Shown piece after piece: positions 3,391 to 8,018 of a stretch of DNA of 64,000 nucleotides. Below the pieces are notes generated by a model, which saw only the letters and a list, made by a program, of their open reading frames with translations, had not been told where the DNA came from and made no database searches. The stretch is from the IMG/VR virus record IMGVR_UViG_3300046653_000093, positions 62,001 through 126,000 of that record, one strand, 5' to 3'. A program made the position numbers and the translations under genes. The number at the start of each line of letters is the position of its first letter. Position 1 is the stretch's first letter.

Positions 3391-4305
3391 ATGGATTCCA
3401 ATAAGCTCCTTAAACGCTGGGCATCTTCAAATAGAGATATCAATTCTCAATTGGTAGTTTCTGAAAATCTATTAGATGGTTTCTTTGGTACCAAAGTTGC
3501 TGCTGAATCTATGGATGATGAAGCCTGTAAGATTCTATCAGCCTACGTGGCGTTCACCAGAGCGCTCTACTTAGTACATCAACAGAATCATTGGGACGCC
3601 CAAGCATATGGAGATCACTTACTCTTTCAACGACTATACGAAGGGGCACAAGAACTAGCAGACGACGCGGCTGAGCGTGTAAAGGGTCTGTGTGGTGACG
3701 TTATTTTTGAAGGTGAAGAGGCCATCACAAAGAAGTTTGAACCAAGTATCAAGACACTAAGCTCACTTCTAGAATCCTCGTTGGAGATTGAACGCGCATT
3801 CCAGGATGTATGTCAAAACACCTATGATGCCATGAAGAAAAAAGATATGATGACTCTTGGGCTTGATGATCTTCTTATGTCACAAGCCAGTCAAGGTGAA
3901 GTACATATTTACCTTCTGCAGCAGGCTTTAAAGGGACTAGGAGAAGATATGAGTAGTGTAGCTGATAATGCTAAAGAGATTCTTGAAAAGACCGAGAGTT
4001 TTAGGGATATTTTGGTGGTGGCCGGCAGGAAGCGCAAGCCAGAATATAAGCCAAAGGACATCATCGAGTATATCGAAGCTGCCCTCAAGGTTCGTCCACA
4101 TGAAGAAGTTTTCGCTTATATCAAGGGATTGGAAGAAGCCCTGCTAGATCAGGTCATCAACATCTTGATGAAAACTAACCCTGCTTTGTTGAAGAAGATC
4201 TTTGTTAGCAGCATCGCAAAGCCTGAAGTTGAAATTGAAGAAAAGATTGAATCTCCTGAGCTGCCAGGCTTGGAAGATGCGCAGAAGAGTGTTGTCCTGT
4301 TGTAA
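3391..4305 (+). CDS. Dps/ferritin-like protein with C-terminal extension
   Basis: HQQNHW...YGDHLLFQRLYE...DDAAER ferroxidase-type pattern; start moved to ATG 3391. Confidence 0.7.
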   Translation: MDSNKLLKRWASSNRDINSQLVVSENLLDGFFGTKVAAESMDDEACKILSAYVAFTRALYLVHQQNHWDAQAYGDHLLFQRLYEGAQELADDAAERVKGLCGDVIFEGEEAITKKFEPSIKTLSSLLESSLEIERAFQDVCQNTYDAMKKKDMMTLGLDDLLMSQASQGEVHIYLLQQALKGLGEDMSSVADNAKEILEKTESFRDILVVAGRKRKPEYKPKDIIEYIEAALKVRPHEEVFAYIKGLEEALLDQVINILMKTNPALLKKIFVSSIAKPEVEIEEKIESPELPGLEDAQKSVVLL

Positions 4306-4335
4306 TAGAAAAGAGGTAGTTGTTATGCTTTAGTT

Positions 4336-4569
4336 ATGCAAACAACCAACAATTACGTTCCGACAATTATAGAACGCAGCGCCCGTCGAGCTACCCGCCG
4401 TATCTGCGGGGGTGATAGAGCTTTGCGTTACTTTAAAAAATCATCACATCGTTCTTATCGAAGAATGATGAACCAACAACTCAGCGACATTACGTCTGGT
4501 TACATCGACGTGGAAGATTACAACGATGAACCCGGTCATTGCAAATGCACCAGCTGGGATATTTGGTAG
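4336..4569 (+). CDS. Hypothetical basic protein
   Basis: ORF with upstream GAGG. Confidence 0.5.
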   Translation: MQTTNNYVPTIIERSARRATRRICGGDRALRYFKKSSHRSYRRMMNQQLSDITSGYIDVEDYNDEPGHCKCTSWDIW

Positions 4570-4659
4570 TTGATTGTATTACCTATTAATTGGCAACAGG
4601 TGATATTTCCCTATTATTTATAGGGTTTCAATAAAATTCAAAAATTACAGGGAGGTTAT

Positions 4660-5745
4660 ATGTCCACATCATTTTCTAGACTTATCACAAGTGTAGTTGT
4701 ATTCATGGCGCTTTCCTGTGGCAGCAAAGGGCAAGAGAGCGGCAATGGAAATACTGGAGGATCTGGTTACGTAATTCAAACTGGCGGAACCGGATCTGAT
4801 ATTGATGGAGGCTCTAATGGAGGTGGAACAACCTGTGCTCAGCAACAAGTCCCACTAAAAGTATTGCCTCCAGACATCTTGATAATTCAAGACAGATCTC
4901 AGTCGATGACTGATAACTCCAACGATAAAACCTGTACTGGTGGGTGCGGAGCGGCATCAAAATGGGCACAGGTAACCACCGCTATCGAGGATGTAGTTAA
5001 CTCTACCCAAAATTCTGTAAATTGGGGACTGTTCTATTTCAGCAATGGAGTTACCGAATGTGGAGTTAATACAACACCAGCTGTGTCTGTATCTCTAGGC
5101 AATGCCAGTCAGATTGTTACTTCTCTAACGGCAAATTCTCCAAGTGGCGCAACCCCAACAACTGCAACTGTAAATAATGCAGTTGCCTATATGCAGACAC
5201 TTACAGATCCTAATCCAAAGTATCTTTTGCTCGCAACAGATGGAGAACCAAACTGCCTTGGTGGAAATGCAAACAACAAAGACATTGCTGGGGCTACCGC
5301 AGCAATTGATAATGCAAAGTCTCTGGGCTTCCCCGTATTCGTTGTGGGTATTGGTAATGTCACTACAGCAACCTCAACACTAAATGGAATGGCTAACGCT
5401 GGTGGAAAAGCTCAAGCGGGCACCACAGCTTATTATGCGGTTACTGATACTGCGAGTCTTGAAACGGCCTTGACCAATATTGTAGGTATGGTATCTTCAT
5501 GTACCATCTCATTGCAAAATGTACCAAGTGGTCAATGGACAATTGCTATTTGGGCAACCGATTCTTCTGGTAAAACAATTCAGATCCAAAATAGCGCATC
5601 AGATGGTTGGGCCTATACTGACACAAACAAGTCGAGCATTGCACTGGTTGGACCAATATGTGATAACCTAAAGAATGGTACATATTCAAATATTCAGTTT
5701 GTTTATACTTGCCAAGATCAGGTTATTAATCCACCAGTGAACTAA
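4660..5745 (+). CDS. VWA-domain lipoprotein, myxobacterial type (CglB-like)
   Basis: GGAGG RBS; signal peptide with lipobox ALSC; Gly/Thr/Ser linker; MIDAS DRSQS, GATPT and TDGEPN; many Cys. Confidence 0.85.
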   Translation: MSTSFSRLITSVVVFMALSCGSKGQESGNGNTGGSGYVIQTGGTGSDIDGGSNGGGTTCAQQQVPLKVLPPDILIIQDRSQSMTDNSNDKTCTGGCGAASKWAQVTTAIEDVVNSTQNSVNWGLFYFSNGVTECGVNTTPAVSVSLGNASQIVTSLTANSPSGATPTTATVNNAVAYMQTLTDPNPKYLLLATDGEPNCLGGNANNKDIAGATAAIDNAKSLGFPVFVVGIGNVTTATSTLNGMANAGGKAQAGTTAYYAVTDTASLETALTNIVGMVSSCTISLQNVPSGQWTIAIWATDSSGKTIQIQNSASDGWAYTDTNKSSIALVGPICDNLKNGTYSNIQFVYTCQDQVINPPVN

Positions 5746-5746
5746 A

Positions 5747-5914
5747 GTGCCCAGACATATTCAAGAAAATCAATTATTATTAGCTAAAGAGAAAGATGTA
5801 GATAGGTTAGCTCAATATTTAGGTATTGATACAACAGGTTTATCAAAAGAAGATATAGCAAGTATTGTTGCTAGAAAAATTCAATTCTATACTGAGCCTG
5901 TTAATTACTATTGA
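5747..5914 (+). CDS. Small hypothetical protein (55 aa, GTG start)
   Basis: Open frame VPRHIQENQLLLAKEKDVDRLAQYLGID... filling the gap before tRNA-Ser. Confidence 0.45.
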   Translation: MPRHIQENQLLLAKEKDVDRLAQYLGIDTTGLSKEDIASIVARKIQFYTEPVNYY

Positions 5915-5915
5915 T

Positions 5916-5998
5916 GGAAAGACAAGCCAATTGGCGATGGCATCAATTTCGAAAATTGACGAGCGCAAGCCTTGGGGATTCGAATTCCTCTCTTTCCG
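5916..5998 (+). tRNA. tRNA-Ser(CGA)
   Basis: GGAAAGA/TCTTTCC acceptor, G73, TCAAT-TTCGAAA-ATTGA anticodon arm, long variable arm. Confidence 0.88.
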
Positions 5999-6011
5999 CA
6001 AAAATTATTAT

Positions 6012-6094
6012 GGTAGGACAATCCAATTGGTGATGGAACCTGTTTTGAAAACAGTCGAGCGCAAGCCTTGGGGATTCGAATTCCTCTCCTACCG
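6012..6094 (+). tRNA. tRNA-Ser(TGA)
   Basis: GGTAGGA/TCCTACC acceptor, G73, loop TTTGAAA; 3' half nearly identical to tRNA-Ser(CGA). Confidence 0.88.
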
Positions 6095-6098
6095 CAGA

Positions 6099-6401
6099 AT
6101 GAGTAGATACACAGAAATTGCTAAGCGTCTCCAAAGCGGAGAAACTGTCACGTATAAAGAGTTCGGTAATTCAATGTTACCAAAGATGAAAAGTGGCGTG
6201 AAGGTAAGTGTCCGCCCCTGTAAATTAGAAGATTGTAATGTTGGTGATATTGTCCTATCTAAAGTACATGGAGCCCATTATTTGCACTATGTCAAGGCTG
6301 TAGCCTCTGATGGTAAGGTTCAGATTGGAAATGCCCATGGACATATTAATGGATGGACAAGAACTGTCTTTGGTAAATTAGACTCCTTTGAAAATCCATA
6401 G
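6099..6401 (+). CDS. S24/S26-family peptidase-like protein
   Basis: GNSMLP serine motif, VGDIVL and GHINGW; true start is ATG 6099. Confidence 0.7.
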   Translation: MSRYTEIAKRLQSGETVTYKEFGNSMLPKMKSGVKVSVRPCKLEDCNVGDIVLSKVHGAHYLHYVKAVASDGKVQIGNAHGHINGWTRTVFGKLDSFENP

Positions 6402-6463
6402 TCGAGAAACGCGAAGTTCACGGCTATAAATTCAGCTAATAATTAAGAATAGATTTAATACCA

Positions 6464-6913
6464 AGATGCTTTACATAGGTAAAGTAAACCACATCGGTTC
6501 AGCCCCGCCGCCTTAGTTGGCCGTGGGGCTTTTGGGGTAGGTGCTCAATACTCAGATGGTACGAGAGCCACACCTGGATCCATTAGGCAGCGGTGACCAT
6601 GACGCAGGGATAGACCGAATTCGATGACAAGCGGATATTACAGCTAGTCTGGCATTGGAAAGACAATTGACAGCTCTGAGAAAGATCAGAGATCGAAGGT
6701 AAGCGGATTGCAGCTCCCTGGAATCTGGGAAGACAGATGACGGCCGGAAAGACAGCAAAGTCGATGAGTAAAGCGGACATGTATAAGCAGCTTCCCGACA
6801 ATTCGGATAGACGATTGACAGCTGGAATTAGACAGCAAATCTCGATGATAAGCGGAGCAAATTTATACAGCTACAGACAGCGGGAAAGACAGCTGACGGC
6901 GGGAACAGACCGC
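6464..6913 (+). ncRNA. Candidate large structured ncRNA upstream of tRNA-Ser(GGA)
   Basis: GC-richer than its flanks, no credible ORF, many stems; strand inferred from the flanking + strand tRNAs. Confidence 0.6.
6600..6913 (+). repeat. Tandem array of four 68-81 nt units plus one partial unit, each with two GAAAGA-type hairpins
   Basis: Units start at 6621, 6693, 6761 and 6842; shared TCGA(T)GA..AAGCGGA..CAGCT..stem-GRWAGA-stem-GACR-stem-GAAAGA-like-stem. Confidence 0.85.
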
Positions 6914-6918
6914 ATTAT

Positions 6919-7003
6919 GGAGAGTCAATCCGATTGGCGACGGAACCTGCTTGGAAAGTAGACGAGCGTAACAGCCTTGTGAGTTCGAATCTCACACTCT
7001 CCG
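6919..7003 (+). tRNA. tRNA-Ser(GGA)
   Basis: GGAGAGT/ACTCTCC acceptor, G73, loop TTGGAAA, GTGAG-TTCGAAT-CTCAC T-arm. Confidence 0.9.
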
Positions 7004-7008
7004 CAAAG

Positions 7009-7455
7009 ATGAATGTTAACCAAAAAGGCGTGGTTGGTTTGGTTAAGGTAATATCCGATTTAGTAAGTAGAGGATATGAAGTATTCACGCCAATTTCTGA
7101 TTTTTGCCCAGTTGATATTATTGTGGCAGATAGTAAAATGAACCTTAGGAGGATACAGGTAAAATACCGTGAACATGACAACAGGAATAAGAATGCAATA
7201 GTTGTACAACTTGACTCAATAGTAAATGGGAAAAGAGTTCCAGTTGATGTTTCGCTAATTGATGGGTGGGCAATATATTTCCCTGAAACTAATGAAATTT
7301 ACTACGTTCCCAAAAGTGAAGTGCAGGGCAGGAGTATTTGGCTATGCATTAGGGAGTATAAATTAAGAAGAAACAAATTAGCAAGTAAGTTTCTTGATCC
7401 TGATAGAATTTTTGGAGAGGCAATCCAACAGCTGGCGATGGAATCTGGTTGCTAA
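7009..7455 (+). CDS. PD-(D/E)XK endonuclease (group I intron-associated/homing type)
   Basis: KG...DLVSRGYEVFTPISDFCPVDII...RIQVKY pattern; start at ATG 7009. Confidence 0.8.
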   Translation: MNVNQKGVVGLVKVISDLVSRGYEVFTPISDFCPVDIIVADSKMNLRRIQVKYREHDNRNKNAIVVQLDSIVNGKRVPVDVSLIDGWAIYFPETNEIYYVPKSEVQGRSIWLCIREYKLRRNKLASKFLDPDRIFGEAIQQLAMESGC

Positions 7456-7503
7456 CCAGACGAGTTCGAAAGGGCCTTGCGAGTTCGACCCTCGCCCTCT
7501 CCG
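7414..7503 (+). tRNA. tRNA-Ser(GCT)
   Basis: GGAGAGG/CCTCTCC acceptor, G73, TCTGG-TTGCTAA-CCAGA anticodon arm, long variable arm. Confidence 0.9.
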
Positions 7504-7517
7504 CAATATGAGTACCT

Positions 7518-8018
7518 ATGAAAAAAGATACCTTCTACGATCAATATCCACTTGTATTTCCCACACGAGAACCTGAACAAGGTTTTCATTGTGGCAAGGG
7601 ATGGTATCAACTTCTGGATTGCCTATTCGAAGTAATCCAAAAACACCTTGAGAAGCTTGCAGAGCCGCCTCCGTTCCGCATTACTTACATCAAAGAGAAG
7701 TATGGCACGGTGCGCATCGGCTACGAGCACGCCACAGACTACATCAAGGAAACCCTCATCCAAGCCGAAGAGATGAGCGGACACATTTGCGAAACATGCG
7801 GCGAGTATGGCAAGCTTCGTGACTCCGCGCTTTGGATCAAGGTTCGCTGCGATGATTGCGAAGAGAAACATTTCGCATATCAAAACGCACCATTGTCTCC
7901 AGAGTCTCAAGCGGCGCTGGATGAGGGGCTACGTAGCGCCAAGGCTGACATCGAAGCTGGGAAGCCCCCGATTGATCTCGGGAGCTTCGCTCAGTACGCT
8001 GATGACGATGAAGAGTAG
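7518..8018 (+). CDS. Conserved phage hypothetical protein
   Basis: CGKGW...IKEKYGTVR...ICETCG...C pattern common in phage ORFs. Confidence 0.6.
   Translation: MKKDTFYDQYPLVFPTREPEQGFHCGKGWYQLLDCLFEVIQKHLEKLAEPPPFRITYIKEKYGTVRIGYEHATDYIKETLIQAEEMSGHICETCGEYGKLRDSALWIKVRCDDCEEKHFAYQNAPLSPESQAALDEGLRSAKADIEAGKPPIDLGSFAQYADDDEE

Follow-up and report, generated by a model that had tools for sequence, protein, structure and literature searches.

A tandem array of twin-hairpin RNA modules upstream of a jumbo phage tRNA-Ser gene belongs to a widespread phage RNA family with no match in Rfam

Results

The array lies in a tRNA-rich stretch of a jumbo phage genome

The window analyzed here is a 64-kb stretch (bases 219445-283444) of a 392-kb virus record that CheckV rates 91% complete and that represents a jumbo phage from peat and permafrost metagenomes. 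ARAGORN finds 52 tRNAs and a tmRNA in this genome, but it misses four class II tRNA-Ser genes in the window, which lie at 5916-6001 (CGA), 6012-6097 (UGA), 6919-7003 (GGA) and 7414-7504 (GCU). These genes were recognized as mutual repeats and as BLAST matches to annotated phage tRNA-Ser genes. The tRNA-Ser(GGA), which has a long variable arm and an anticodon loop reading UUGGAAA, scores 33.6 bits with the Rfam tRNA model (gathering score 29) over 6919-7003 when the region is searched alone. The neighboring open reading frames are a 100-aa S24-like ORF upstream (6099-6401) and a PD-(D/E)XK endonuclease ORF of family PF11645 downstream (7009-7455). Between the S24-like ORF and the tRNA lie a terminator-like hairpin at 6501-6534 (GCCCCGCC...GGCCGUGGGGC), followed by UUUU, and the array itself (6551-6918, about 0.37 kb, + strand), for which the 5' limit is approximate and the 3' limit is the inferred RNase P site. 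The terminator-like hairpin was read from the sequence and is not called by a simple terminator scan; however, it is conserved with compensatory changes (GCUCCAGAGC...AGCCUGGGGC) in L284, a contig from a syntenic relative of this phage.

The array consists of four tandem units that start at 6621, 6693, 6761 and 6842, and a decayed unit 0 (GGCAGCGGUGACCAUGACGCAGGGAUAGACCGAAU) at 6578-6620. Thus, the observation made in the preliminary description, four structured units and a partial one directly upstream of the tRNA gene, is confirmed. The unit head pattern TCGANG-N(1-4)-AAGCGGA occurs exactly four times in the window, always on the + strand, whereas shuffled sequences give 0.02 matches, and the only other match in the 392-kb genome lies inside a coding region. 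In unit 1 (6621-6692), the head UCGAUGAC-AAGCGGA-UAUUA-CAGCU is followed by two adjacent hairpins, AUUG-GAAAGA-CAAU and CUCUGA-GAAAGA-UCAGAG, joined by UGAC. In unit 2 (6693-6760), the head is followed by AUCUG-GGAAGA-CAGAU, GAC and GCCG-GAAAGA-CAGC. Unit 3 (6761-6841) has a head with an 11-nt variable loop, then UCG-GAUAGA-CGA, UUGAC and GCUG-GAAUUAGA-CAGC, and unit 4 (6842-6913) has a head, then AGCGG-GAAAGA-CAGCU, GAC and GCGG-GAACAGA-CCGC. The six hairpins originally listed are present as written, and the two that were left out (hairpin B of unit 2 and hairpin A of unit 4) also fit the pattern, each with one mismatch. The last hairpin ends at 6913, an AU-rich spacer AUUAU (6914-6918) follows, and the tRNA starts at 6919.

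Within 6551-6918, AGAC occurs 9 times against 2.3 expected and TGAC occurs 7 times against 1.3, and none of 2000 shuffles reaches either count. GGA opens nearly every loop, but its count (14 against 10 +/- 2.6) is not significantly enriched. Tandem Repeats Finder reports no array, because the units are too diverged. Thermodynamic folding was unremarkable, with z-scores of -0.04 to -1.5 for individual units and -0.74 for the whole array, so that the sequence of this phage alone would not prove structure and the case for structure rests on covariation in homologs. A match to a known Rfam family had been named in advance as an outcome that would remove the novelty; however, no Rfam 15 family overlaps 6540-6918 at E<=10, small self-cleaving ribozymes (hammerhead, twister, pistol, hatchet, HDV-like) included, and none overlaps canonical members of the family described below in nine other loci at E<=1. 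CRISPR geometry (near-identical repeats of 24-47 nt separated by unique spacers of similar length) does not fit either, since only about 15 nt of the head and scattered loop nucleotides are shared between units.

The repeat unit belongs to a widespread, covarying RNA family

The first two patterns used to collect similar sequences were too loose to read on their own, and every locus but one showed a single match. The exception, L199, is an unrelated 45.7-kb phage contig with the same hairpin-linker-hairpin grammar next to tRNA-like minihelices. A much more specific pattern, for which we estimated fewer than about 20 chance hits, returned more than 105 loci in viral contigs, which is a lower bound. 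Nearly all hits read (U)GAC-N-stem-G-GAAAGA-C-stem'-UGAC-RGC-stem-G-GA(A/C/G/U)AGA-C-stem'. In these phages the AAGCGGA sequence that was initially taken as a conserved unit head is simply the 5' strand and loop start of hairpin 1 (AAGCG-GAAAGA-CGCUU), and the AAGCGGA...CAGCU heads in our window are therefore decayed extra (third) hairpins of the same kind. We call the 44-nt core the GANAGA twin hairpin: two adjacent 4-6 bp stems, each with a six-nucleotide GANAGA loop closed by an invariant G-C pair, preceded by (U)GAC and joined by UGAC-RGC. That the unit is not unique to this phage and that its usual copy number is one to three had been missed in the preliminary description.

The absence of covariation among homologs would have counted against the RNA reading from the outset, and it was examined in two alignments. 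In an alignment of 20 members from other phages and bacteria (A3), 97.5% of cells are paired against 77% in shuffles, with 43 double-sided changes against 11.5, and sliding the partners by 1-3 columns leaves only 20-38% paired. A covariance model built from A3 (R1), which contains no sequence from this phage, recovered 169 hits in the viral loci collected. In 65 distinct viral sequences, 95.6% of cells are paired against 76.5% and 8 of 10 pairs show compensatory change, although this second alignment is fitted to the model and therefore leans toward the structure. G-U and U-G pairs are frequent, so the structure is specific to the strand that is co-oriented with the genes.

R1 matches the four units over model positions 1-44, at 6650-6693 (23.6 bits, E 1e-7), 6718-6759 (29.7 bits, E 4e-10), 6796-6839 (26.6 bits, E 7e-9) and 6874-6916 (36 bits, E 1e-12) for units 1 to 4, respectively, and nothing else in the window or in the whole genome. 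Unit 0 gives only a weak match (6594-6619, 5 bits), but it aligns with the corresponding segment of L284. Units 2-4 keep the GANAGA loop with its closing pair, the UGAC linker and the RGC start of hairpin 2, whereas hairpin B of unit 1 has AGAU in place of AGAC; units 3 and 4 have 8- and 7-nt loops in hairpin B. In total, the array carries eight canonical and four degenerate hairpins.

Genomic context and phyletic distribution

All 141 distinct contexts of the module are co-oriented with their neighbors. In 25 of them, an ARAGORN tRNA starts 1-6 nt after the model end (2 nt in the present array), which is 4-9 nt after the last base pair, whereas none starts at 7-51 nt and no minus-strand tRNA lies within 300 nt. 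Unit 4, 5 nt from the tRNA, occupies this canonical place. The count is a lower bound, because several downstream sequences are evident tRNAs or tRNA-like minihelices that ARAGORN does not call, but about half of the contexts have no tRNA-like RNA downstream. In other contexts a Shine-Dalgarno sequence follows within about 2-11 nt, and the genes there encode small HTH regulators, a nuclease and a primase-like protein; some copies are followed by a U-run. Copy number is low, with 2-3 clustered copies per ~100-kb phage record; two such records have only two hits each, roughly 0.4-1 kb apart. No protein family within 5 kb is shared by more than 10 of 79 locus groups, the commonest being a CI-like repressor about 1.2 kb upstream.

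Cultured phages with one or two hairpins include lambdoid mEp390, where the motif lies in the leftward early operon, Tetrasphaera TJE1, Cronobacter ESP2949-1, Klebsiella P7641, Acinetobacter Alexa and Pseudomonas Medea1. In ESP2949-1, the hairpin precedes a tmRNA-like piece, with a tmRNA-like tag frame about 120 nt downstream. A BLAST search of cultured phages with the region from our window found only the tRNA parts; the second piece in these hits, which could have suggested an integration duplicate of the tRNA, turned out to be further tRNA-Ser genes.

In 185,579 bacterial species genomes, the strict pattern gives 115 loci, about half of which are Acidimicrobiia. There, three tandem hairpins with the same loops and linkers lie inside the tmRNA gene, within its pseudoknot region, and in a sample of that class 23 of 101 genomes have exactly one R1 hit. 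The remaining loci look like prophage regions, judged by their similarity to the viral contexts, and come from Clostridia, Spirochaetes, Gamma- and Betaproteobacteria, Prevotella, Saccharibacteria and others. In Anaerolinea thermophila, the motif lies between two identical 37-nt repeats, which marks it as a CRISPR spacer; that at least one bacterium carries a spacer against the module fits a conserved, exposed phage sequence. A search of the E. coli genome found rare, unannotated matches. The loop octamer GGAAAGAC equals E. coli 23S rRNA 2056-2063, but 37% of shuffles give such a match and the third loop position varies in the family, so we treat it as a lead only.

The array is found as RNA and has recently expanded

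Lack of transcription was another outcome that would have spoken against the initial proposal. Six metatranscriptome runs hold 13-17% of the sampled words of window positions 5800-7600, and four of them were examined in detail. In three independent runs, from peat, permafrost and bioreactor samples, the only contigs on this 1.8-kb stretch cover the array alone: 6551-6854 (depth 126), 6588-6874 (depth 20) and 6559-6814 (depth 11). All are 100% identical to the window, and the flanking ORFs have depth 0 in those runs, a pattern that uniform DNA carry-over would not give. These contigs carry no strand information and their ends may be assembly breaks at repeats, so the true 5' and 3' ends are not known. 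The contigs start just after the terminator-like hairpin and run uninterrupted for 256-304 nt through three to four units. The array therefore accumulates as a multi-unit RNA. The fourth run holds a variant array in which 203 nt are replaced by 232 other letters.

A search based on synteny of flanking proteins gave one identical contig and two relatives that lack the array at this site. In contrast, L284 has the decayed unit 0, unit 3 and unit 4, but not units 1 and 2, and has 34 extra nt before its tRNA-Ser(GGA); thus, tight spacing to the tRNA is not obligatory. A conserved protein encoded across the region would also have refuted the RNA reading, but 1-nt and 4-nt indels within the aligned units exclude a conserved reading frame. 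Units 1 and 2 are therefore a recent tandem expansion.

Discussion

The interpretation offered in the preliminary description is partly supported. Selection acts on RNA structure rather than on a DNA repeat or a protein, as had been proposed, and neither a known RNA family nor CRISPR geometry fits. The proposal that RNase P would release the array is consistent with its place as a tRNA 5' leader, although the position is observed and the cleavage is not. No protein partner is shown for the proposed multivalent binding RNA, a boxB/nut-like scaffold is not demonstrated, and precursors of ~70-nt small RNAs are disfavored.

The analysis directly establishes that the array is made of members of a widespread, covarying, strand-specific RNA module, that its last copy sits in the canonical place of the family before a tRNA, and that it is present as abundant multi-unit RNA, whereas co-transcription with the tRNA, cleavage by RNase P at 6918/6919 after AUUAU, and persistence of the released ~0.37-kb leader are deduced. 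Function is not shown. Our preferred reading, which is tentative, is that the module normally forms the last ~45 nt of RNA before a functional 5' boundary, most often the +1 of a tRNA or tRNA-like RNase P substrate and otherwise a Shine-Dalgarno sequence. About 24 nucleotides are invariant on short, freely covarying stems, the host range crosses many phyla, copy number per genome is low, no phage protein is shared near the module, and a chromosomal tmRNA lineage uses it. Together these point to recognition by a conserved host machine that handles tRNA and tmRNA, rather than by a phage protein or by the fold alone. RNase P is the most economical candidate, given the tight spacing, but its involvement is inferred from position alone, and the ribosome or RNA polymerase are alternatives; no complex was modeled, because no single candidate partner was well enough motivated. 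The tmRNA copies, which lie some 200 nt from the RNase P site, and the roughly half of contexts without a tRNA-like RNA downstream speak against this reading, and the hairpins are not unusually stable, so stability alone does not explain the accumulation. In this view, a single module would act in cis to define, insulate and protect the boundary, and the fourfold expansion would make a high-capacity, multivalent version, whereas the close relative has only two good copies.

A bolder extension, which we consider unlikely although the data do not rule it out, is that the twin hairpin is a universal RNA handle for a core machine of tRNA and tmRNA biology, most economically RNase P and alternatively the ribosome. 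Phages of at least eight bacterial phyla would place it at the 5' boundary of their own tRNAs, tRNA-like RNAs and early messages to capture that machine, Acidimicrobiia would have built the same handle into their tmRNA, and this jumbo phage would have multiplied it into an abundant ~0.37-kb RNA that recruits or titrates the machine during infection.

Other explanations are each less likely than the preferred one. A trans-acting sponge or decoy, in which the released RNA titrates a host RNA-binding or defense protein and the repeat number sets the capacity, is unlikely but would agree with the abundance of the RNA, its many hairpins with invariant loops and the recent gain of units relative to L284; however, most family members are single or double modules placed tightly in cis before a gene, and no toxin gene is adjacent. 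Processive antitermination, with the nascent twin hairpin binding the elongating RNA polymerase directly or through a factor and allowing read-through of terminators and Rho sites in untranslated tRNA and early operons, seems somewhat less likely still. It is favored by two adjacent hairpins with purine-rich loops resembling boxB (GAAAA/GAAGA/GACAA), by low copy number, by co-orientation at the head of genes, by the CI-like repressor in 10 of 79 locus groups, and by downstream genes of early types (HTH regulators, primase, nuclease). On the other hand, the array lies downstream of, not upstream of, the nearest terminator-like hairpin, the tmRNA-internal copies are hard to explain, and mEp390 already has room for put-like hairpins right after its likely promoter, separate from this motif.

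A passive module without a partner, a folding insulator and exonuclease block that keeps flanking RNA from misfolding the tRNA or the ribosome-binding site, is about as doubtful as antitermination. After cleavage it would leave the upstream RNA with a hairpin and a 3-5 nt tail too short for 3' exonucleases, and in tmRNA it would replace pseudoknots, which are largely replaceable, as filler. The tight spacing to the tRNA +1, the placement in the tmRNA pseudoknot region, the accumulation of the leader and the U-runs after some copies agree with this view, but a passive block does not explain some 24 invariant nucleotides (loops, closing pairs and the UGAC linker) held across many phyla, and the stems are short and of ordinary stability. 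Cutting into ~70-nt RNAs by self-cleavage or a dedicated endonuclease is very unlikely: the units are of tRNA-like length and, as ribozymes are, rich in conserved nucleotides, but the RNA contigs are uninterrupted, no Rfam ribozyme matches, no ToxN/AbiQ-like gene is adjacent, and the usual family member is a single module. Least likely is a DNA-level element (iterons, a promoter, or single-stranded DNA hairpins for replication or recombination). Repeated AGAC and TGAC words and hairpins that could in principle form in single-stranded DNA are outweighed by covarying stems with G-U pairs on one strand only, constant co-orientation with genes, presence inside mature tmRNA genes, and abundant RNA with silent flanks. 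Degenerate tRNA genes were rejected for lack of acceptor pairing, and C/D-box or K-turn and hammerhead readings were rejected because UCGAUGA does not fit CUGAUGA or RUGAUGA.

On the evidence available, the module belongs to no known system. Literature searches gave no description of the motif, although it may be present unnamed in the large IMG/VR catalogue of candidate structured RNAs (PMC10690425), which was not checked for it. If the family is as undescribed as the Rfam and literature searches suggest, it is a compact RNA module that is easy to test and is shared by very different phages and a chromosomal tmRNA lineage. A module that sits exactly at the RNase P site of phage tRNAs bears on how phages get their own tRNAs matured and used in competition with those of the host, and on what tRNA leaders do after they are cut off. 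It is also a practical marker that flags unusual tRNAs and tRNA-like genes that ARAGORN misses, including the four tRNA-Ser genes in this window.

Like lambda-type nut sites and HK022 put RNA, the family consists of short hairpins with purine-rich loops in phage RNA, co-oriented with genes, present in few copies per genome and found in early operons; in put, two adjacent stem-loops act without a phage protein, and similarity to put was not tested. Compared with nut, the 4-6 bp stems carry loops of 6-8 nt with consensus GANAGA rather than a GNRA-like pentaloop, no boxA (CGCUCUUA-like) was found in 6401-6925 with up to one mismatch, and no conserved N-like gene was found nearby, while a cognate arginine-rich N protein and terminator read-through were not tested; the family also sits at position -5 of tRNAs and inside tmRNA. 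CsrB/RsmZ-type RNAs, which titrate CsrA, likewise carry many repeated short hairpins with GGA at the start of the loop in an abundant non-coding RNA. Here, the invariant part is GGANAGAC plus UGAC, not ANGGA, and the family occurs in phages of phyla that lack CsrA (Actinomycetota, Bacteroidota, Cyanobacteria), mostly as one or two modules in cis; we consider a CsrA sponge disfavored, but with a GGA excess short of significance and the host of this peat phage not identified, the comparison does not settle the matter for this array. Type III antitoxin arrays (ToxI) and phage pseudo-ToxI, which neutralizes ToxN, share tandem RNA repeats whose number has expanded in a phage lineage. However, the units here are 68-81 nt long, built of simple hairpins and not cut apart in the RNA data, and a tRNA and a PD-(D/E)XK endonuclease, rather than a ToxN/AbiQ-type gene, lie downstream. 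Spacer-derived RNAs such as the 3'ETS-leuZ sponge are also by-products of tRNA processing that persist and may act on their own, but ordinary tRNA leaders are short, unstructured and unconserved, whereas this one carries a module conserved across phyla and multiplied fourfold. Finally, in Acidimicrobiia the same module, in three tandem copies, lies within the region that the Rfam tmRNA model aligns to pseudoknots PK2-PK4; these copies are plain hairpins rather than H-type pseudoknots, and in phages they stand outside any tmRNA.

tRNA, tmRNA and endonuclease genes of the jumbo phage

The window contains four class-II tRNA-Ser genes that are not called by ARAGORN, located at positions 5916-6001 (anticodon CGA), 6012-6097 (UGA), 6919-7003 (GGA) and 7414-7504 (GCU). 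Only the GGA copy was checked with Rfam. By standard wobble rules, together these four genes cover all six serine codons. Two open reading frames in the window look like homing-endonuclease genes scattered among the tRNAs: a PD-(D/E)XK endonuclease ORF (PF11645; 7009-7455), whose 3' end overlaps the start of tRNA-Ser(GCU), and an ORF directly after tRNA-Thr (55-762), which reads like an HNH endonuclease, although it was not searched against Pfam. Outside the window, in the same phage genome (G000:C1), ARAGORN calls a 91-nt "tRNA-Pyl" with anticodon CUA at 210332-210422. This may be an amber suppressor, which would hint at stop-codon recoding in this jumbo phage. The genome also encodes a tmRNA with the tag ANDNAYAAAA (G000:C1:117243-117590), which is not hit by R1, the covariance model of the twin-hairpin module.

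Immediate surroundings of the array

A terminator-like hairpin followed by UUUU (6501-6534) lies between the S24-like ORF and the array. It is conserved with compensatory changes in the relative contig L284, and the metatranscriptome RNA contigs start just after it. No sigma-70-like promoter is evident between this hairpin and the array. In two relatives (contigs L123 and L124, positions 4300-4880), in which the S24-like protein is 72-74% identical, the S24-like gene is followed directly by another ORF, which we did not identify, instead of the array and tRNA.

Elements associated with the motif in other phages and bacteria

In Anaerolinea thermophila (locus L325, around 1690-1717), the twin-hairpin sequence lies between two identical 37-nt repeats (GTTGCACCCGTCTCGATCCGTTAGAGGATACTGAAAC) and is therefore a CRISPR spacer aimed at this conserved phage motif. 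In enterobacterial and gut phage contigs (L405 at 2520-2650, L408 at 760-850 and 1220-1300, L229, L230 and L238), a recurrent element, ACAUG-RR-AGCG..., opens a long hairpin directly after the motif. "ORF036" of phage mEp390 is partly homologous to non-coding DNA of Klebsiella phage P7641, so it may not be a real gene. In L251 (422-928, minus strand), L245, L230 and similar contigs of ~100 kb, tRNA genes of 117-128 nt carry inserts of about 40-55 nt in the anticodon loop. Weak matches to YrlA (Y RNA-like) occur nearby in L143 and L251.

Possible resemblance to rRNA and RNase P RNA, and observations on tmRNA

The loop octamer GGAAAGAC is identical to the segment of E. coli 23S rRNA that holds A2058 (23S rRNA 2056-2063; positions 2315-2322 of the rrlH locus, L419). 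However, 37% of shuffles give such a match, and the third loop base varies in the family. The universally conserved GGAAAGUCC of RNase P RNA also looks similar, although this resemblance was not tested.

Two further observations concern tmRNA. In Cronobacter phage ESP2949-1 (L407, 2001-2175), a single hairpin is followed about 120 nt later by a tmRNA-like tag frame (ANDDLMLMAA, then stop) in an unannotated region, for which Rfam gives a weak match to permuted tmRNA (24.9 bits); this may be a phage tmRNA-like gene. In Acidimicrobiia (L299 at 6484-6863 and L337 at 4729-5115, both on the minus strand, as well as L293 and L364), tmRNA genes carry three tandem copies of the hairpin, with GAAAGA loops and UGAC linkers, in the pseudoknot region, and 23 of 101 sampled genomes of this class have exactly one R1 hit.
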